Assembly: GCA_028826165.1 (NCBI GenBank)
Contig: JAPDFW010000136.1
Coordinates: 682,001-746,000 of the forward strand
Direction: 5' to 3'
Length of the DNA stretch: 64,000 nucleotides
From: Anaeramoeba ignava BMAN
Taxonomy: Eukaryota > Protista > Anaeramoebae
Positions within the stretch are counted from its first letter, which is position 1; each line of letters begins with the position of its first letter. The translations under genes and the position numbers were made by a program. The notes under the pieces were generated by a model. That model made no database searches. It had not been told where the DNA came from and saw only the letters and a list, made by a program, of their open reading frames with translations. This document shows positions 3,702 to 31,329 of this stretch, in pieces.

Positions 3702-6367
3702 ATGTCAACCGTTATTCAAACTGCTCAAGTTTTGGCCCAAATTAAAAAAATAACAACAAATTCATGGAAACCTTTTATAATTACTCTTACAATAAATTCA
3801 CTTGAATATCAATTACATCAAAAAGTAAATTAAAAAAAAAATAATAAGAAAAAATTTTTTTCTTTTTTAATCAATTAAAAAAATAAATAAATAATTAAAT
3901 AAAAAAATAAATAATAAATTAAAAAAAGAGTCGTTCTTCTCGGAAAAAAGTTATTGATTTATCCAAATCTTCTCTTGTTAGAATGTTTCATGGATCAGAT
4001 CCTTTATTGAAAATTACAGAAAATTCAACTATTTTATTTTTAAAATTTTCAAATGAAGAAGAATTATCAAAATGGAAAACAGCTATTGAAGCTGTTATAA
4101 CTAAAATTGTACTTATCAAATCAAAATTTAAAATTAAAATCAAAATCAAAATTAAAATCAAAATTAAAATCAAAATAAAAATAAAAATCAAAATTAAAAT
4201 CAAAATTAAAATCAAAATCCAAAATCAAAATAAAATTAAAATCAAAATTAAAATCAAAATCAAAATCAAAATTAATATCAAAATCCAAAATTAAAATAAA
4301 AATTAAAATCAAAATAAAAATTAAAATCAAAATCAAAAATTAAAATTAAAATTAAAATCAAAATAAAAATTAAAATTAAAATCAAAATCAAAACTCAAAA
4401 TTTAAATTAAAATCAAAATTAAAATCAAAATTAAAATTAAAATTAAAATTAAAATTAAAAATAAAATCAAAATCAAAACTAAAATTAAAATTAAAATTAA
4501 AAATAAAATCAAAATCAAAATTAAAATTAAAATTAAAATTAAAATCAAAAATTAAAATCAAAATTAAAATCAAAATTAAAATCAAAATTTAAAAGAAACA
4601 AGAAGAATATTTCAATCAATCAGAAGAATCAAATAAAGCAAATCAAAATAAAATGATTTTTAAATCAGGACTTCTTCAAAAACAAGGAAAAAAAACACTT
4701 TTTCGACAAAAATGGAGAAAAAGATATTGTGAATTACTAAAAAATTCACAAAATAATCAATACGAATTAGTTTATTATGCAGATGATTCAGTAAAATAAA
4801 AAAATAATGAAAAATTAAAAGTGAAATTAAAATGAATATTTTTATTTTTTAACAAGGCAACTAATCCAAAAGGAAAAATAAGTCTCTCAAAAGTAAAAAA
4901 CACAAAAGAACATGGATTTAAAAACGAACCATTTGGATTTCAAGTTGAAACTGAAGGAAGAACTTATTGTTTTGCAGCAAATAGTAAACATGAAATGCAA
5001 AGTTGGGTTTCACTTCTTTCAAATTGGACATCAAATTTTGATGAGAAGAAATTTATTGAACAACATCAACAAAACAGATCAACTCGTTCATATGGAAATA
5101 GAAGTGTAGTTACAGGAAATCAACTTGATAATCAAACATTTCCTCAAGAAAAAATGGATCATTTAAAAGAAAATTTAAAGCAAGATTTAAAAGAAGATTT
5201 AAAAGAAGATTTAAAAGAAGATTTAAAAGAAAATTTAAAAGAAAATAAAAAAGAAGATTTAAAAGAAAATAAAAAAGAAGATTTAAAAGAAGATTTAAAA
5301 GAAAATTTAAAAGAAGATTTAAAAGAAGATTTAAAAGAAAATTTAAAAGAAGATTTAAAAGAAGATTTAAAAGAAAATAAAAAAGAAGATTTAAAAAAGA
5401 AAATTTAAAAGAAGATTTAAAAGAAAATTTAAAAGAAAATTTAAAAGAAGATTTAAAAGAAGATAAAAAAGAAGATAATTTAATTAATGAAAATAAGAGT
5501 GATGATGAAAATGAAATAGGAAATTTTTTAAAAGATTATAAAATACGACATGAAAAATACAAAGATAAAGATAAAGAAAAAGATAAAGAAAAAGAAAAAG
5601 AAAAAGAAAAAGAAAAAAAATATAATGAAAATGAAGATTCTATTCAATTACAAGAAAAAACACAAAAAATTCAAGAAAAAAACAACAAACATGACAATCA
5701 AGAAAATAGTGAGATTGATCAAAATGAAATTAAAGAAATTGATCAAAATGAACAAGAAGAAATTGAAATTCCTTTTGAAGGAAATGAGGACGAATTAGAA
5801 GAAAAAATAAACGAAATCAACAAAAGATTCCAAGAAAACCAAGAAAAAGAAAGAAAAAAAGAATTAGAATCAAATTCACCGTTATATGAACCACAATATA
5901 GGGAACTTTTCCGAGAAATACAACTAGAAGATATGGGAGATTTACTTGATTTTACAGAAAAAGAAGAAATTTTTTTCAGTCAACTTCGTGAATTTTTAAC
6001 TCAAGGTCGAGAAGTTCAATCGATTGGAAAAAAATCGAAAATTAAAAAATCACTTCTTTTTGTTACTTCTGATGGATCTGGTATTGGTTTGACAAGTTTT
6101 GATAGACAAGAGTTCTTGAAAGTCTTCCCAATCGATTCCATTTTGAAAATTGAAGAAGGAATTGAAGAGAAGTTTTTGCAAAAGGTTCAAAATTTACCTA
6201 AAAATATACACAATGAAATTGATAATTCTTCTTTTTTTTCTGTTTTTTTTGAAGAACAATGCATAAGATTAATTGCAAAATCATCTCGAGAAAAATTGTT
6301 TTGGATTCAAACTCTTGAAAAACTTCAAAAGTTATCAAAATTAAAAATATCTGCATTTTATTTTTAA
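3702..6367 (+). CDS. Multi-PH-domain protein (three PH-like domains, acidic KEDL/KENL-repeat linker). Exons 3702-3824, 3929-4108, 4596-4790, 4857-6367; apparent frameshift near 5400
   Basis: Three phase-0 GT-AG introns give PH motifs: ..LKFSNEEELSKWKTAI; KSGLLQKQGKK..WRKRYCEL..GRTYCFAANSKHEMQSWVSLL; C-terminal ..IRLIAKSSREKLFWIQTL. The frame break lies in an A-run within the 12-nt repeat. Confidence 0.8.
4120..4590. repeat. Intronic (AAAATT/AAAATC)n microsatellite
   Basis: Inside intron 4109-4595. Confidence 0.95.
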
Positions 6368-6682
6368 AAGGAAAAATGAGAATAAAAAAAAAATTTTGAC
6401 AAAACAAAACATTTATGAAAAATTTCTATTTTTGTTTTTTTTTTTGAAAAGAGATTTAAAAAGAATAAAAAAAGAATAAAGAAAATTTTGATGAAACTGA
6501 AACATTTATGAAACTTATCGAAATTAAAAAAAGTGAAAAAAAAAAATTTGAAAAAATTAGAAAGAAAAGAAAAAAAATGAAGTTAAACGAAATTATTGTT
6601 TTCCAATAAATTGATCTAAATGAACCAATTTAAAAAGAAAAAGCAAAAGCAAAAAAGCAAAAAGAAACGAAATAGGGAAAAA

Positions 6683-8092
6683 TTAGAACATTGAACCCAA
6701 ATTTGAGATTGCACCACTAGCTCTTTTTTGGATATTAGGATTTGAAGGATAGAGTTTGAGGATATTTGACAAAATCTGAACGCCATCAAGTCTTGAGATG
6801 ATCTGTCTGTTATCATTATCGCAAGACATATTCATCAAGCAACCGCAAGCCTTGTCAACAAAAGTTTCCTGGTGTGTGTTTGATTTAAGGAGTTCGATAA
6901 CGGATTGGATTGCTCCCTTTTCACCGACAAGACGACGAGCGGTTTCATCGAAGGAAAGATTTGAGATAACAGAAACAACTCTTTCAAGAACACGGAAATT
7001 TGAGGGGAAATTTTTCATTGCTTGGATAAGAAGCTCAATGCCGCCGTTCTGGGCGATAGAGACCTGATTTTCAGCATCGAGCGCGAGAGTAAGAAGGACA
7101 CCGAGAACGCGCTCTTGGATGCTTGGCTCAAGGGGGTTTGCTTTCATGACTTGGAGGATGACGAGGACGCCATCATTTTGGCCTATTGTGAGTCTGTTTT
7201 GTTCGAGCATTGCGAGGTTGTGGAGGGCTGAGAGACAACGCTGGAGAATCTGTGTGTTATTGGAGTATTTCTGCATGACGGAGAGGACTGCAACAAGACC
7301 TCCTTTGGAACCGATGAGTTTGGAGTTCTCGTTGTTGACTGAGAGATTAGAAATGAGACCGATGCAGCGGTTGAGGAGCTGCTGCTTGTCCATGTTGTTT
7401 TCTATGAGGGAAACGACGAGATCGATCCCGCCGCCTCGACCGATAAGGATGCCGTTGACATCATTTGCTGCGAGATTGAAAAGCGCGGAAAGGCCTTTCT
7501 CCTGGATGTCAAGGTTGCTCTGGTGCTGTTTCATGAGGTTGATTATCAAAACAACGCCGCCTTCTTTGGCGACAATTGAGGAGATGGAATCGTGAAGAGC
7601 GAGGGTAAGCATTGCGCCGAAACCCTTGGCAAGAATCTGGGGTTTGTCTTTGTGGTAACGCAGGAGATTGAGAAGGACTCGGATTCCGCCCTCTTTGGCG
7701 ATTAGCACTTTGTTCTCGTCCTGAAACGACAAGTTCCAAATGGCCGCGCAGCATTTTTCCTGTAATGTCAAGTACACTTGATGATCCTTCATGGTTTGGA
7801 TGACCACTGTAATCCCCCCTAATTTTCCAATTTCAAGTGCGTTTGTGTCGTCAACCGAAATGTTTCCAAGCGCCCCGATTCCCTTCTCTAGTATGTTGTT
7901 GTTTTCCGCGTTGTTTTTTAATGTCTTGATGATTGCTTCAATTGCTCCAGATTGCCGGATAAGCGGTTGATTCTTGTCTTCCATTGCAAGGTTGTTTAAG
8001 GTGATAAAATGGTTAACAAGGACTTGTGGTGTGCCTTGTGCTGCATCGATTCCTGATACTATACTCTTTAATGACTCAAGTGTTGTTGTCAT
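6683..8092 (-). CDS. Armadillo-repeat protein (aardvark/Vac8-like), intronless, 469 aa
   Basis: About 10 ARM repeats of ~42 aa (e.g. QEKCCAAIWNLSFQDENKVLIAKEGGIRVLLNLL). Confidence 0.9.
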   Translation of the reverse strand: MTTTLESLKSIVSGIDAAQGTPQVLVNHFITLNNLAMEDKNQPLIRQSGAIEAIIKTLKNNAENNNILEKGIGALGNISVDDTNALEIGKLGGITVVIQTMKDHQVYLTLQEKCCAAIWNLSFQDENKVLIAKEGGIRVLLNLLRYHKDKPQILAKGFGAMLTLALHDSISSIVAKEGGVVLIINLMKQHQSNLDIQEKGLSALFNLAANDVNGILIGRGGGIDLVVSLIENNMDKQQLLNRCIGLISNLSVNNENSKLIGSKGGLVAVLSVMQKYSNNTQILQRCLSALHNLAMLEQNRLTIGQNDGVLVILQVMKANPLEPSIQERVLGVLLTLALDAENQVSIAQNGGIELLIQAMKNFPSNFRVLERVVSVISNLSFDETARRLVGEKGAIQSVIELLKSNTHQETFVDKACGCLMNMSCDNDNRQIISRLDGVQILSNILKLYPSNPNIQKRASGAISNLGSMF

Positions 8093-22743: not shown

Positions 22744-25730
22744 ATGACTGAACAATCTTTACAAGGAATTATAAGAAATTTAACAGAAAAAGTTGGAGAG
22801 AAACGAAGACAAGCAGCAACAGATCTATTAGAACAAATAGTAATTTGGAAAAACCGGGATGAAAAAAGCAACATTTCAGAATCAATAAAACAACTTTCAG
22901 ATTTCATACGAAATCGGCATCAATCTGGACGAAGAGGAGTACTTTTAGGACTAGCAGCTGTTGCTGTGGGACTTCAAGACTTAATTCAATTGTATCAAGG
23001 TCCTATTTTGGAATCTGTTATTAATTGTTTTGATGATCCAGAACCTTCAATTCGATATTTTGCTTGTGAAACTCTTTATAATGTTGCTCATGTTTCAAGA
23101 GGCTTTATCCTTATTTTTATTCGTGATATTTTTTCTGCTATTTGTAAACTCATCGATGATAAAGACTCAAATGTTAGAAAAGTCGCTCATCTTGTTGATA
23201 CTCATCTTAAAGATATTGTTACTGAAAATTCTTCTAGTCCAAATTTTAGAATTGATGAACTTGTTCAAATTCTTAGTTCTAAAATGGGAACAGAAATTCA
23301 GTACAATATTAAAATTCATTTTGAAATTAAAATTAAAATTAAAATTAAAATTAAAATTAAAATTAAAATTAAAATTAAAATTAATATTAAAATTAATTTT
23401 GAAATTAATATTAAAATTAAAATTAAAATTAAAATTCAAAAATTAAAATTAAAATTAAAATTAAAATTAAAATTAAAATTAATATTAAAATTAAAATTAA
23501 TATTGAAATTAAAATTCATTTTGAAATTAAAATTAATATTAAAATTAAAATTAAAATTAAAATTAAAATTAATATTAAAATTCAAATTAAAATTAAAATT
23601 AATATTAAAATTCAATATTAATATTAATATTCAAATTAAAAATTAAAATTAAAATTAATATTCATTTTGAAATTAATATTAAAATTCAAATTAAATTTAA
23701 TATTGAAATTAATATTAAAATTCAAATTAAAATTAAAATTATTAAAATTCAAAATTAATATTAATATTCATTTTGAAATTAAAATTAATATTGAAATTAA
23801 AATTAAAATTAAAATTCAAATTAAAATTAAAATTCAAATTAAAATTAAAATTAATATTAAAATTCAATAAAATTTAAAAATTAAATTTGAAAATTAATAT
23901 TAATATTAAAATTCAAAATTTAAAAATAAATTTAGAAATCAACAAAAACTTATAGTTAGTTGGATAGAAACTTTAAACTCAATTCCAAACGTTGATTTAT
24001 TACAATTTCTTCCTCAATTAATTGATGGACTTTTTCGATTTTTATCATCACCAAATGAAGAAGTTCAATCAAAAGCAAACATTTTATTTATTGAATTCAA
24101 AAATGAAATGACAAATCGAGCAAAATCAAAAATTTCGAACGTGAATTACTCAGGATTAATTAAATTATTAACACCTTTTTTTGATTCAAAAGAAATTTTA
24201 ATTGTAAAAACAGCTATAAATTGGATTAATGAAATTATTCTTCTTGGAAAAGAACGTGTTTTATCTGATATCTCCGAACTGATAAATGTCATCCTGCCTT
24301 GTCTTTCAAGCACAAACGAAGACATAAAGAAAAGTGCATTTACTGGAAATGAAAAACTTAAAGAATTAATTGGTGAAATTTCAACTGATCAAATTTATAC
24401 AAAAAAAGAAAGCCAAAATTTCCATCAAATGAATACCATTAGTAATTTGGAAAATAATCAAGATGAGAAAGAAAAAAATATGGAAAATCTTCAGGATGAT
24501 GAAGATATAAAGAAGGATCTTGGAAATGTTGTTCCCAATGAAGAGAACTTCAACCAAGAAAATTTTGAAAATGATAAAAATGATAAAAATGAAAAAATAG
24601 CCTTTGAAAGGCAACCAAATTTACCAGAAAAAAAACATAAAACAGCACTTTATTTGGAGAGAAGTCTCTCGAAATTAAATTCCTCGCAAGATTCTATAGA
24701 AGAGGAATGTCGATTGGATCCTTATTCAATAATTCATATGATCCCAATTCATTTTGCAAGTGAATTCAGTCAAACAAAAATAGAAGCTTTAAGATGGATT
24801 GGGATAATATACGAGAAGAAAGCCTTCGAAGTATCCGAAGAGCTTTTCAATTCTCTCTTACAACTTCTCAAGGATGTCTCTCATAAGGTCGTCCTGTTTG
24901 TTATTGATGTATTGTGCAATTTTTGTGGAACTCATTCTGACAACTTACATTTTTTTATGAAAAAATTAATTGGATTTTTTGAAAAAAATACAAAACTTCT
25001 CGAACATCGAGGAATCTTCATAATCAGGAGGATTTGCAAACTATTGGACTCCATCAAAGTGTTTGTATCACTTGCAACAAACATTTTGTTCTGCAACACT
25101 CTTCATTTCTCGCAATTGATGATCCGAAATCTCAACCTGATGCTTTTTACATCCCCTGAATTATCGGATTTGAGAAGGATTCTGATAGAGTCTGGCAGCA
25201 GTCCGAAGACCTTGCAAGACACCAGCGAGGATGACGATCTCTTTTGCACCCTTTTCCGTTCTTGGTGTGTTTGTCCTGCTTCCACTTTGGGTCTTTGTTT
25301 GCTTCATCAGAAATACAATCTTGCAGGCCATATCTCTCAGACTATCTCAAAACTCCCTGTTGATCTTTCGCTTCTTCTCGAACTAGACAAGCTCGTTCAA
25401 TTGCTTGAAACTCCTGTGTTCGCTATGCTCAGGGTTCATCTTCTGGAAGCAGAAAAATACCAGTCGTTGGTTAGATGTTTATATTCAATTTTTGTTCAAA
25501 TCCCTCAATCTCGTTCTTTCAATATCTTAGACAACAGACTCAATTCTGTTACTAGAATGATCTTCTTTGATTCTTTCCAAAAAAAATCTTCTGACAAAAC
25601 TCAGGCTTATATCAATGAATTAGAGAATTGTTTTGTTCAAAAACAAATTCAAGTTAGGAAAATTAATGTATTAATTAATCCAAATGTTGGTGAAATTGTT
25701 AAAGAAGAAAAGAATCATATCAAAATTTAA
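22744..25730 (+). CDS. VAC14: VAC14 homolog (PIKfyve/Fab1 complex scaffold). Exons 22744-23300 and 23936-25730
   Basis: RRGVLLGLAAVAVGL..IRYFACETLYNVA; post-intron LIVSWIETLNSIPNVDLLQFLPQLIDGLF; C-terminal LFRSWC..ELDKLVQLLETPVFAMLRVHLLE..PQSRSFNILDNRL. Confidence 0.93.
23310..23930. repeat. Intronic (AAAATT)n-type microsatellite
   Basis: Inside VAC14 intron 23301-23935. Confidence 0.95.
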
Positions 25731-25819: not shown

Positions 25820-28800
25820 TCATTTCTTCTTGCTTTCGAGAATAGAATTGAAATTGCTTGTTTTTTCAAGTTGATAAAAATCTTCAAATTCCAAAAATTC
25901 TTGATAAAGTTCTTCAGAAACTTCAATTTCATCTGGAAACTTATCATGATATAACCAATAAAATAATATATTGAGAGATTGAATTGATCTTTCAGAATAA
26001 TCAGAAACACTGTCAGAACTTTCTTTAACCATAATAAACATTGAACGAAACAAATTAGATCGAGTAGCAAGAACAATTTTATGAATTTTAAGTTCTTGTC
26101 CATTTTTGCATTTTATTCTGAAATCTTTGCTTTTTTCATCTTTATATAATTCATTAAGATCATGAAGAAGTGATTTTTTTCCAATTTTCTCTTTAAAATT
26201 TGCCAATCCAATTTCTTTTGATATTTTTTCAAGTAAATCCAAATCTTGAAAAGTTTGAATAACTCCACAATAAACAAATCTTAAGAAAATTTGAGTTTCA
26301 TTGGATGTATAGTTTTTGAATATATCTTTGTTTAAATTCATAAAAATTTCATTTCCAAGTCTCATTCTCAAAATATCTTTATGACATTCTATTGATTCAT
26401 CAGAACATTCAAAAACAAAATCTGTTAATTCCTTTCTGATTAATAAATCTTCAAATTCTCCAACAATACTATAATATTCATTAATTTCTTTCATTACTTC
26501 CTTATCAGTAAGAGCATCTAATGGAGTTTTTTTATTCTAATTACTCAATAAATAAGATATTTTTTTTAATCAATAATTTTCAAACTAAAACAAAACAAAA
26601 TAAAATATTTACAATCTAAAAAAAAATGGAATAAATAAATCAATCAATAAATCAATTTTCTCTTTTTCTTTTTAAAATACATCTTCTGAACGAATTGATC
26701 CACCATAATCAATTAAAGTTTTAATTGAATCAAATCTTGGAGTTGATTTAGATCGACAAAAAACTGCTAATGGAGTGTTTTCCTTAAAAATAGATAATCA
26801 AAATTTTTTTTCTTTTTTAAATTCTCAAAAAAACAAATCCATTTTCTTGTTCCTCTTTTTTTATTTACAAACTAAAAAAAATGTTATTTTATGAATTAAT
26901 TAATGAATTATTTATAATAACTTTTATTTTTACTTTCTAAAATGAATTAAAAATTAAAATTATTTTTTTTTTAATTTTTGGAGAATATTTGATTTGAAAA
27001 TACATCTCTTGAATTAACAAATGCTCCATTTTCAATAAATAATTCAATAAATTCTGGACCAAGTCTATTCATAGCAATAAAATGCAAAGGGGTTCTCAAC
27101 TTGATTTATTAAGAAAATAAACAATTTTTTTAATAATAATAAATTTATTTGAAGAAAATTTACTTGATCCTATCAAAAAAAAAAGCATTTAAATTAATTC
27201 TATTCTTTGGAAAACAATAATAAATATTTGATTTATTTCTTTACATTTTGAAAAATTTTGATTTTTGAGTTTTTCCATTTTCTTTACAATATCAATATTC
27301 GCATTACTTTTAAAGAAAAATGAATGTTCTCAAAAAGTTGTTCTTTTATTTTGAATAAAAATAAAATGAAAAGAATTTTAGATTCAGAAAAAGAAAATCA
27401 TTTGAAAAACTTCAATTTGTTACATCAAAAATTGATTTTCTGGACTTGTTTATTTTAAAAATATTATCCAAAAATATTATCAAAAATAAATCCAAAAATA
27501 TTTTCATCCAAAAAAATTATCCAAAAATATTATCAAAAAAATTTTCAATGAATCAAAAATTTTTATTTTTTAAAAATTTTTAATAAATTCTACTAAATTT
27601 AGAAAATGCACATGCAAAATGTAATGGGAGAAAAACAATTTATAATTTAGAAAAATTTAAAATTTATTTAAAAATTTTTATTCAAAAAAAATAGAATTTC
27701 ATTTAAAAACTTTAAAAGAAAAGAAAAGAGAATTCAAAAATTAGAAAAATTTTTGAAGATTTAAAAAGTTAAAAGACTCAAATTATCAAAAATGCAAATT
27801 ATTTCAAAATTTAAAATAAAATTAAAAATCAAACATTCAAAACATTTAATTTTTGTCTTTCTCAAATCGATGAATCACAAATCTGGTCAAATGATTCTTT
27901 GATCAAAAAAGATAAATTGGAGTATATTTATAATTTTCAAAAGAAATATTGAAAAATCTCGACTAATAATTAAATGGAAGCAAACCAATCCTCAGTTATC
28001 TTTTGTTTTGGCTTATGATGGAAGATGGTCCTCAAGGAGAAATGCTCAAGAAGGAACTGTTTCTTTTATATGCAAGGAAGGACCAAACAGTTTAATCGAC
28101 AAATTAATTTTATCCATGACACAAAGAAAAAAAACTCATGAAGAAAGTCCTATTAGATCGCACTTTTTTGAAGGTTCCCAAGATTTCAAACTAGGCAGTT
28201 TTATTTTGGAGGTTAAAATATAAAAAATGTAATTTCTTTTTGTTTTTAAAATTTTTAAAAGATAAAATTTTAATTGATTCTAGTTCAAAGAATATAATGA
28301 AAATAATGAATTCTGAAAATCATCAGGTTGAAGAACTTTTTGATCCAAATCACTGGTTTAAAAATTTCTTAACCCCTTTTTAAATCCAGTTTTGAAATTA
28401 AATCAAAAATTTCATTTAAAAGTTCTAATTTAAAAATTAAAGAAAAAATGAAAAACTTTTTCATTCGGAAATTTCAAATTGGTTAAAGTTTTTGGATCGA
28501 ATCTGGTTAAGAATTTTGATAAATTTAAAGCCATCTTTAAAAATGCAATTCAAAGAGCAAGGAAACATTCTTTAATCCAACTTCAAACAACTTAAAGTGA
28601 ATAATTTTTGTCAGGAAAAATTTGATTTAAAAAAAGTACCCAATAAGAAAGAAAGATTAAGTTTATAGTTTGCAAGAAAAATTAAACATTTTTTAAAGTT
28701 CAAATTGAAGATGCAAAAAAAAATCATTCATTCATACTCGACCAATATTGTGGAAAGTTGGAATAACACTTAATTTCAATTAAAATGGTTCCTAAAAATG

Positions 28801-31257
28801 AAAAATTTTTAATCATTTTTTGTTTTATTCGTTGCTTTTTATTAAATGGAATCAAGGATATGAAGGATTATTTATTTTTAATTTTTCGAAACAAAAGAAA
28901 AAATAATGAAAAACATCAAGAGAAAAAAGAAAAATTAAAATGACACTTATTATTACAAAAAGATTAAATTTTTAAAAATATTTCAAAAATTTTTGATTAA
29001 ATTTTTGATTAAAATTTTTCTTTTATTAAATTTTTATTTGCTTGATGAAAAATAAAAATAAAAACGAGAACTTTTTGAGTTAATTCATTTTTTATTTTAT
29101 TTGAGCACCAAAATAAAAACCAAAAATATTTTTTTATTAAGTTCTTAAATTTTTGAAACCTTTTAAAATTTTTATAAAGTTTTTGATTAAAATTTTTTAA
29201 ATTTTTACAAAATTTTTTAAAATTTTTGCAAAATTTTTTTAATTTTTGATTAAATTTTTATTAAATTTTTATTTTTTTTTAAGTTTTTGATTCTTTCAAT
29301 AAATAACAGGTTGAATTTTTGAAGATATCTAATTTTTATTTTTTCTTCCAAATAATGATTAAATTTCAATTAAATTTTTATTAAATTTTTGATTAAATTC
29401 TTTATTAAATTTTTATTAAATTTTTATTAAACTTTATTAAATTCTTTATTAATTTTTTCATTAAATTTTAAAGATAAATTTTTTTAAATTTTTATTATAA
29501 TGTTATATTTTCATAAATTTTTAATTAAATTTTTGATTAAAGAAATATTAAATTTTTATTCTCCCTTCTATACATTTTTTTTCATCTTATTTTTTTAAAT
29601 TTTTAAATTTTGGTGAAAATGTTTATTTAACAGTGAAAAATTGTGTTATTTTCATCAATTAATAAATCAAAATAAACATATTTTCAAAGAAAGTTAACAA
29701 GAACTTGAGAAAAATCCCCAAATTGGTTATCATATATCAGTAGGAATATTATTCCCAAAACTTTGAACAAAGAATATATTCTTGATTTTTGAAAATCAAA
29801 ATGAGTTGAGATTTTGTATTCTCATTTTCAATTCACAATCTTTTTCATCATCTTCCAAATTTTTTTCAAAAAAGAAAAATAAAAGTTTAGATGAAACTTT
29901 CAAAAGTCAAGGGTTTAAATAAAAAAAAGGTTTAAATATTTTTGCAAAAGGTTTAAATATTTTTGCAAAAGGTTTAAATATTTTTGCAAAAGGTTTAAAT
30001 ATTTTTGCAAAAGGTTTAAATATTTTTGCAAAAAGTTTAAATATTTTTGCAAAAGGTTTAAACCAAAGTTGAAAAGGTGTAATTCTATTCTTTGGAAAAC
30101 AATAATAAATATTTGATTTATTTCTTTACATTTTGACAATTTGGATTTGCTCCTTCTTTTAATAATAACTTTACAATATCAATATTCGCATTACTTTTAC
30201 AAGAAAAATGAAGAGGAGTTGTTCCCTTTTATTTTGAATAAAAAAAATAAAATGAAAACAGAATTTAGATTCAGAAAAAGAAAATCATTTGAAAAAACTT
30301 TATTTCTACATTCTATTGATTAAAATTGAAAAAATATTTAAAAATATTATCCAAAAATATTATTATCCAAAAATATTTTACTGGTGGAAAATTTAAATTT
30401 GCTCCTTTTGAAATTAATAATTTAATAAAGACTAAATCTTTAGAAAATGCACATGCAAAATGTAATGGGGAGAAAAACTAAAATTATTTTAGTAAATTTA
30501 TTTATTTATTAATTTTTTATTCAAATAAAATAAATGGTTTCATTTACAGACTTTGAAAATATCAAGAAAACAAAAGAAAATTATTATATTTTTATTTTTA
30601 AATTCATTTTAAAAGTTACTTGCTAATTTTGATTTAAATAAATTATTTGAAATGAAATTAAAAATTAAAAATCAAACATTCAAAACATTTAATTTTGCTC
30701 CTTTTTCAACTAAATAATTAAGAATTTCCGATTGACTAAATTTAGCAACAATATGAATTGGAGAATCACCCTAATTATATTTATAATTTTTAAAATTAAA
30801 TATTCAAAAATATCTAAAACAAATTTTACATCCTTTTTTATTTTTAGATTTGGATTTTAATTGATTTCTAAAAAGGAACAAAAAAAATAATTATTTTTAC
30901 TGACTAAAATTTAATAAGAAATTTGAATATATTTATTATTATTTATTATTATTTATTTTTTACATTTATTGCATTAACATCAACTCCAAGTTCAATTAAT
31001 AATTTTACTACTTCAAAAGATTTATTTTGACAAGCAAAATATAAAGGAGTAATTTCCTTTTTTTTGTTTTTTTTAAAATTTAAAATAAAAAAGCAAAAAT
31101 TTTAATTACATTCTAAAAAATAAAGAATAATAAATAAAAAGAGAATTGAGAACAAAAAATTATTTTTTATTACTGTAACTGCATTTAAATCATGAGATTT
31201 TGCAAATTTCTTAATTCCTTTTAAATTCTTTTTTGAAATTAAATCAAAAATTTCCAT
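25820..31257 (-). CDS. Ankyrin-repeat + tandem BTB protein built with microexons. Exons: 31257-31174, 31112-31110(N), 31056-30964, 30903-30901(S), 30832-30830(D), 30770-30678, 30622-30620(Q), 30550-30548(S), 30477-30382, 30312-30310(N), 30225-30130, 27169-27164(DQ), 27099-27004, 26936-26934(K), 26871-26869(F), 26782-26681, 26615-26613(I), 26536-25820
   Basis: All introns are phase-0 GT..AG. Product: MEIFDLISKKNLKGIKKFAKSHDLNAVT|N|EITPLYFAC..GVDVNAIN|S|D|GDSPIHIVA..GAKLNVLN|Q|S|FFSPLHFAC..GANLNFPP|N|GTTPLHFSC..GANPNCQN|DQ|LRTPLHFIA..GAFVNSRD|K|F|ENTPLAVFC..SIRSED|I|NKKTPLDAL.., then two BTB domains (TDFVF..CHKDILRMR; KDFRI..HKIVLATRSNLFRSMF). Confidence 0.88.
27860..30079 (+). mobile_element. 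Degenerate Mutator-like (MULE) DNA transposon inside an ankyrin-gene intron; right end at 30079, left end not resolved
   Basis: Fragments LAYDGRWSSRRNAQEGTVSFI..HFFEGS (28008-28180) and KKIIHSYSTNIVESWNNT (~28715-28770) resemble the first-Asp and Glu motifs of Mutator-like DDE transposases. A 21-bp subterminal tandem array precedes an abrupt return to intron sequence at 30080. Confidence 0.6.
29913..30060. repeat. 21-bp tandem repeat GGTTTAAATATTTTTGCAAAA, ~6 copies (putative transposon subterminal repeat)
   Basis: Direct reading. Confidence 0.92.
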
Positions 31258-31329
31258 TTAAAAATTATTTAAAAAATTAAAAAAGAAAAAAAAAATGAAA
31301 AAACTTTTTTTCATTTTTTTCTTTTCAAA
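31258..31329. promoter_or_regulatory. 72-bp bidirectional promoter with mirrored AAAATGAAAA / TTTTCATTTT Inr-like elements
   Basis: Lies between divergent ATGs at 31257(-) and 31330(+). The same arrangement is seen at 3568-3701, 8093-8220 and 46976-47054. Confidence 0.55.

Follow-up and report, generated by a model that had tools for sequence, protein, structure and literature searches.

To our knowledge, exons of three nucleotides (nt) have been known only as rare curiosities. Isolated examples come from animals, namely micro-Ex8 of Drosophila homothorax (PMC7392893) and the 3-nt microexons of human MAP4K5 (PMC8632122) and of cytohesin-1 (PMC6314551). In these genes a one-codon exon lies between a canonical AG and GT and adds one residue, and the same arrangement is predicted for the gene considered here, an ankyrin-BTB gene on the minus strand of a 64,000-nt stretch of DNA from Anaeramoeba ignava BMAN (contig JAPDFW010000136.1; hereafter the window, in whose numbering all coordinates are given). 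The animal microexons, however, are single, are found in genes with long introns and exon definition, often have dedicated regulators and are often alternative, whereas the A. ignava gene has ten candidate tiny exons, which come in pairs at several junctions, lie between complete short introns and occupy the same structural position throughout a gene family. Plant microexons are mostly longer than 3 nt and single, in contrast to the tandem single-codon exons that would be present here at every repeat of a repeat protein. The misannotated plant microexons resemble those predicted for our gene in being very short, constitutive coding exons that lie in conserved domains and have been missed by annotation, which leaves public proteins short of residues (PMC8831610). 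Single 3-nt exons and plant microexons overlooked by annotation have been described before; what is new is a variation on them, in which single-codon exons stand in tandem and recur, throughout a family, at one structural position of each repeat. The locus further has a fused exon of 6 nt, junctions that carry only one unit and a dead copy that serves as a control. Searches of the literature on Anaeramoeba splicing and introns, on Anaeramoeba microexons and on 3-nt or single-codon exons found no description of this system, and a term search of the genome paper (PMC11550330, text and supplement), which covers intron lengths and splice-site logos, found no microexons.

In domain order, with ankyrin repeats followed by BTB, the predicted protein is like the Cullin-3 BTB adaptors with ankyrin modules, but its tail contains two BTB-like stretches and its family is enormously expanded. 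The micro-exon genes of Schistosoma encode secreted proteins and have rows of symmetric tiny exons of 6-36 nt that carry most of the coding sequence, with documented variation by skipping. Symmetric tiny exons that are multiples of 3 are likewise a feature of our gene, although they account for only 33 of its approximately 1,410 coding nt. Ratchet points of recursive splicing have the form AG/GT, with a spacing of 0, and leave nothing behind. They share with the present units an AG and a regenerated GTAA inside an apparent long intron, and probably also a stepwise removal, yet spacing 0 is absent from the gaps of our gene and occurs 4 times, against 160 for spacing 3, in its paralogs. The strict spacing of 3 (once 6), together with the avoidance of stop codons, would mean that the triplet is kept and translated, unlike a ratchet point.

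We interpret the locus as being, in our judgement quite probably, one ankyrin-BTB gene of about 470 codons in which the loop-tip residues of the repeats are carried by separate 3-nt exons, and once by a 6-nt exon. From a restored repeat period, better junction scores, the lack of stop codons, stronger splice sites and breakage in a dead copy, all of them properties of the DNA sequence, we infer that the units are included in messenger RNA (mRNA) and translated. An earlier reading of this DNA (the original prediction) had proposed ten such units, each with AG before and GT after it, and direct reading of the minus strand recovered every one: all ten, one of which is 6 nt long, conform to AG-NNN-GTA and have full-size introns on both sides, and in nine of the ten the downstream donor is GTAA. 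The introns comprise 16 short ones, measured at 53-86 nt in agreement with the predicted range, and one of 2,960 nt. With the units included, the gene model has eight large exons (84, 93, 93, 96, 96, 96, 102 and 717 nt), nine exons of 3 nt and one of 6 nt; every intron is in phase 0, every tiny exon is a multiple of 3, and the joined open frame has 470 codons. Domain searches were carried out on single exons, the joined model being used solely for repeat period and junction scoring.

The units in the gaps cannot be due to chance. Nine AG-N3-GTA units are present in the 1,031 nt of the six short inter-exon gaps, whereas 2,000 shuffles that preserved dinucleotide composition gave 0.23 on average and never more than 2, and there is not a single case of spacings 0-2 or 4-9 between AG and GTA in the same gaps. 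Across the whole window (G+C 18-20%) the minus strand has 22 AG-N3-GTA matches, nine of which are in the ankyrin-BTB gene. Seven more fall in a second ankyrin-BTB gene at 37.7-39.4 kb, six being true units and one an exon end; the two genes had been described as quite diverged, and their BTB tails are indeed only 33% identical. The other matches in the window, on either strand, are all inside G+C-richer coding DNA and were read as chance, which agrees with the earlier remark that other genes of the window have no AG-NNN-GT units in their introns. A third candidate for a gene of this kind at 43.26-43.54 kb, this one on the plus strand, was discarded on the same grounds, since it is G+C-richer DNA resembling minus-strand coding sequence.

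The content of the units points to their being translated. Successive TPLH motifs are 33, 33, 33, 34, 34 and 36 amino acids (aa) apart when the units are included and 31, 31, 32, 32, 32 and 35 aa apart when they are left out, and paralogs with the ankyrin array in one uninterrupted open frame, whose protein sequence is for that reason beyond doubt, have a period of 33-35, never 31-32. The Pfam Ank matches of the large exons span positions 2-32 of 33, which places the units between repeats, at the ankyrin hairpins where they had been predicted, and the positions left uncovered by the large exons, 33 and 1, correspond to the residues that a unit pair supplies. Junctions were also scored, with and without the unit residues, against a profile for which three intron-free paralogs supplied the two-repeat units. 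Including the unit residues raised the score of each of the six testable junctions, by 3.5-22.7 bits, and the sum from 270.3 to 331.9 bits; for junction 5, between exon 5 and the 6-nt exon, the gain with the D-Q residues was 10.9 bits. Stop codons are absent from a set of 178 triplets, made up of the units of the gene, of its neighbour gene and of 29 paralogs, against 12.6 expected from position-specific composition (P about 2e-6), whereas control triplets following AG at other spacings in the same DNA include 6 stops in 73. GTAA donors follow 33 of 36 units but only 11 of 21 large exons (p=0.002). The two positions of a unit pair do not appear to be interchangeable, the first codon being polar in 52 of 63 pairs and the second in 37 (p=0.006). 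In the unit pairs of the 29 paralog loci, the first codon is mostly for a polar residue (N, K, D, R, S) and the second more often for an aromatic or hydrophobic one (Y, F, L).

It could be argued that the units are skipped, in which case the gaps of 117-221 nt would be removed as single introns, the repeats would have 31-32 aa, and the units would be leftover or decoy splice sites. Skipping would keep the frame, since the units are multiples of 3 in phase 0, and it is what the public models of the gene and its paralogs imply by joining the large exons directly. Exons this short are, however, commonly missed by read mappers and gene predictors (PMC8831610), so that public models weigh little on unit inclusion. 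Leftover or decoy sites would not account for a spacing of strictly 3 nt, for the absence of stops, for a period restored to 33-34 aa with a higher score at every testable junction, or for donors stronger than those of real large exons; moreover, the units are lost in an unselected duplicate, and the sub-introns that they delimit fit the modal intron length of each species. We therefore regard skipping as very improbable. The unit residues would correspond to the two positions at the hairpin tip at which designed ankyrin binders are randomised, and we take them to be part of the binding surface. Given that location, and since all units are symmetric (phase 0-0) so that any subset stays in frame, the ten tiny exons might alternatively be optional cassettes, whose alternative inclusion would produce many loop variants and a diversified binding surface. 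That the strongest splice sites are at the units suggests constitutive use instead, and repeats of 31-32 aa are absent from intron-free paralogs; optional use thus seems to us an unlikely explanation, though less so than skipping.

From the 5′ end, exon 1 (31174-31257, 84 nt) contains the start codon and the N-terminal cap and has the donor GTAATA; it is followed by microexon 1 (AAT, N; 31110-31112), in the context tag/AAT/gtaatt and with flanking introns of 61 and 53 nt. Exon 2 (30964-31056, 93 nt; ankyrin repeat 1, Pfam Ank positions 4-32 of 33) is separated by microexons 2 (TCA, S; 30901-30903) and 3 (GAT, D; 30830-30832) from exon 3 (30678-30770, 93 nt; repeat 2, positions 2-32 of 33). If the donor of exon 3 at 30677, an unusual GTTTGA, were left unspliced, the frame would enter TGA at once; over these 36 nt the dead copy of the 5′ half is 100% identical to the live one. 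Microexons 4 (CAA, Q; 30620-30622) and 5 (TCT, S; 30548-30550) lead to exon 4 (30382-30477, 96 nt; repeat 3), and microexon 6 (AAT, N; 30310-30312) to exon 5 (30130-30225, 96 nt; repeat 4). A long composite intron (27170-30129, 2,960 nt; donor GTAAAG, acceptor gatAG), presumably removed as one, precedes the 6-nt exon GATCAA (D, Q; 27164-27169, atag/GATCAA/gtaaat), which has two codons on one exon. Then come exon 6 (27004-27099, 96 nt; repeat 5), microexons 8 (AAA, K; 26934-26936) and 9 (TTT, F; 26869-26871), exon 7 (26681-26782, 102 nt; a degenerate repeat 6), microexon 10 (ATT, I; 26613-26615) and exon 8 (25820-26536, 717 nt including the stop codon), which encodes the last partial repeat and the tail with the two BTB-like stretches. 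Against the Pfam Ank cut-off of 21.1 bits (PF00023), exons 2-5 score 32.5, 23.5, 24.5 and 39.1 bits, exon 6 falls slightly below it with 20.4 bits, and exon 7 is unmatched. The BTB match (PF00651) scores 53.4 bits (cut-off 20.5) over residues 127-225 of the last exon, the second stretch being weaker. Near-identical 'cloned introns' were considered as well and ruled out, the 16 short introns being without detectable mutual similarity (median z 0.23, maximum 3.8).

The long intron had been thought to carry a transposon. A decayed element fragment is present in it, but the intron did not arise by a simple insertion, as it also contains satellites and remnants of the gene's own 5′ half. The fragment (27936-28810, plus strand) lies antisense to the gene and derives from a dispersed element of about 2.1 kb, recognised by a protein-level match to a 576-aa open reading frame (ORF) of that element (L038:1750-3477, minus strand), with 52% identity over 27936-28217 and a weaker match up to 28770. 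Two 96%-identical copies of the element are present on other contigs, C37 and C77 (L038:1750-3477, minus strand; L037:1799-3922). The conserved motifs of the 576-aa ORF (AYDGRWSSRRNA, ELFDPNHW and NIVE.WN) hint at a transposase-like protein; Pfam gave no match for this ORF, nor for a 71-aa ORF inside the long intron. The satellites are a 21-nt tandem repeat (29925-30082; 6.6 copies, 98% matches), which starts at the end of the duplication shared by the live and dead copies, and further AT-rich satellites at 28962-29560. The dead duplicate of the 5′ half, on the minus strand, extends from the end of exon 3 to the start of intron 5 (27195-27957) and aligns with 30080-30811 in three blastn segments at 77-89% identity, while a second piece (28362-28461, minus strand), 82% identical to 31204-31309, covers the upstream region and the first 54 nt of exon 1, its start-codon frame being broken. 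Since the intron is composed of satellites, an element fragment and duplicate remnants, the original intron 5 must have been of ordinary length, about 75 nt.

Up to the duplication boundary, the last 50 nt of the dead copy are 100% identical to the live copy. Exons 4 and 5 of the dead copy are frameshifted into stops, the sites of microexons 4, 5 and 6, the three that can be aligned, each lack either the AG or the GT, and the region of units 1-3 is now occupied by other sequence. The live copy, of the same age, retains five open exons and six intact units, and its preservation while the duplicate decayed argues for selection on the live 5′ half. Identity between the live and dead copies (27195-28461 versus 30080-31309) is patchy, blocks of 36-56 nt at 100% alternating with stretches at chance level, and the element fragment is interleaved with the dead-copy remnants; this pattern is unlike even neutral decay. 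Gene conversion or template switching may be behind the patchy identity.

Several observations weigh against a single gene with included units. One is the exon-3 donor GTTTGA: among 14 donors of large exons in the paralogs, just 2 are of the GTT type. Another is that TTAG-N3-GTAAA is not over-represented genome-wide, with 1,102 matches against about 1,400 expected from composition and 2,706 for the reversed control, so that the case rests on local clustering and position; in a hand count of the first 100 matches listed, about 57 were in tight clusters, without any stop, and about 43 were isolated, with 4 stops. A collection of 5.8 billion proteins holds no transcript-derived protein of the ankyrin-BTB gene, and homology searches, including an exhaustive representative search, returned only genome-annotation proteins of Anaeramoeba, none of them transcript-derived, paralogs that were looked up included. 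All sources of the 12 protein clusters inspected are NCBI models, and the single EukProt match, P0157, is from another genome and at most 38% identical. The last exon matches, with 100% identity, an A. ignava protein of 295 aa at NCBI, P0001, which is named 'speckle-type poz protein'. P0001 has its start inside exon 6, at an internal Met, and its sequence runs SRD/ENTPL and SED/NKKTPL, so that the three units in its range (microexons 8, 9 and 10) are left out; this model also makes the 3′ half a gene of its own and ignores the 5′ half. Finally, the donor context of exon 5 is present a second time, in identical form, within the long intron, along with many potential acceptors, and correct long-range splicing is for this reason not assured.

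The last two points bear on whether the locus is one gene at all. Duplication, satellites and the element may have broken it, with the 3′ half expressed alone as annotated, and the 5′ half either silent or encoding a five-repeat protein that would read into intron 5 and stop after three codons. The start of P0001 at an internal Met in exon 6, the length of the intron (2,960 nt, where 76 nt is the mode), and the presence in it of a duplicate donor and a dead exon 5 copy with a usable AG speak for such a break. On the other hand, starting at the internal Met would remove the first helix of repeat 5, and the end of exon 5 and the 6-nt exon are in the same repeat register as the other junctions, the D-Q residues raising the junction score. 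Five exons remain open and six units intact in the live 5′ half, against decay of a duplicate of equal age, and annotated A. ignava introns reach 4,168 nt (PMC11550330). A broken locus is thus a possibility to be taken seriously, albeit clearly the less probable one. On the simplest reading, the 5′ half forms the beginning of the gene and is joined to the rest by splicing over the composite intron; splicing across these 2,960 nt, and with it the existence of one gene with all seven junctions, is presumed on the strength of the repeat register and the preserved 5′ half.

The arrangement is not restricted to this locus. A first look with the BTB tail gave about 2,220 matches in the A. ignava genome, and BTB adaptor-like genes, as judged from such matches, appear to be very largely expanded in it; the closest paralog is only 41% identical. 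In many of these first-look matches the tail is preceded by ankyrin, RCC1 or small-GTPase modules. Within 1.5 kb upstream of the BTB tails of 29 paralogs, AG-N3-GTA was counted 160 times in sense orientation, never with a stop codon as its triplet, and 9 times in antisense orientation, other spacings from 0 to 12 occurring 4-23 times each (spacing 0, 4 times). The original prediction had suggested checking existing annotations: the public models of the paralogs splice the large exons directly together over gaps of 193-309 nt, usually with two units inside, while the only clean gap to lack a unit measures 80 nt. Paralog sub-introns are mostly 54-116 nt. Introns of A. ignava have a modal length of 76 nt (Table S3A), those of Anaeramoeba flamelloides one of 113-124 nt (PMC11550330).

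An ankyrin-BTB locus of A. flamelloides (L035; GCA_027625915.1, JANTQA010000023.1, 4270-4640) has the same layout, reading NVDSRN/AAA/GGA/EYTPL with AAA at 4415-4417 and GGA at 4514-4516, and its sub-introns of 117, 96 and 115 nt fit the modal intron length of that species. The public model there, P0064, uses a donor further upstream, GTAGAT after ENGSN, and so drops five in-line codons together with the two apparent 3-nt exons, giving a period of 27 aa, compared to 34 with the two exons, which equals that of the next repeat. This evidence consists of one junction of one gene, and a second A. flamelloides strain (L036) is 99% identical at the locus, so that conservation across strains has no power. 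The proposal that the unit layout is a family property is nevertheless borne out by the 29 paralog loci and this A. flamelloides gene. Orthologs of A. ignava and A. flamelloides share about 37% amino-acid identity on average (PMC11550330), and from the layout common to such distant species it would follow that it is either old or has arisen more than once.

As for the mechanism, each ankyrin repeat would be encoded on its own exon of about 93-102 nt, and one or two residues at the tip of the inter-repeat loop (Pfam Ank positions 33 and 1) on 3-nt exons of their own, fused once into a 6-nt exon, every tiny exon being bordered by complete short introns of the size normal for the species. Under intron definition, each intron of 53-86 nt would be removed alone and the sequence between two introns would stay in the mRNA, the length of the exon between them not itself being read. 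With only 3 nt between them, the upstream AG and the downstream GTAA could hardly be occupied simultaneously by 3′ splice-site factors and U1, respectively, and the two introns flanking a triplet would probably be removed in succession; once the first is gone, the triplet would belong to an exon of normal size. Sequential removal would explain why the strongest splice sites are at the tiny exons. The protein, by its combination of an ankyrin surface with BTB, is most likely a substrate adaptor, and would as such work with Cullin-3 ligases.

Elsewhere in the window, the region 6001-8000 has 38% G+C, compared with 5-30% in the remainder, and contains no Rfam RNA family, an Rfam search of the whole window having given zero matches. 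At 23167-23870, between two plus-strand open frames (22744-23646 and 24108-25730), there is a long low-complexity tract of KLKLKL/NFNFNF type, an AAATTT-like satellite, which would be an intron or a coding insert of a plus-strand gene.

If the interpretation of the ankyrin-BTB gene is true, with ten tiny exons in this gene and hundreds in its family, the practical lower limit for routine exon recognition would be one codon, and the question is raised of how, and in what order, two spliceosomes assemble 3 nt apart. Many public Anaeramoeba proteins would then be lacking loop-tip residues, likely those important for ligand binding, and structure predictions and family comparisons that start from public models would err at the binding surface. 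Evolution would also have at hand a simple way of adding residues to loops. It is conceivable, though we would consider it rather a long shot, that the Anaeramoeba spliceosome routinely handles tandem single-codon exons, that in evolution the ankyrin binding loops are edited, with codons added, lost or altered, by gain and loss of AG...GTAA pairs within introns, and that the exons are perhaps even used in variable combinations per cell. Should inclusion be variable, a huge adaptor family would have tunable binding surfaces.

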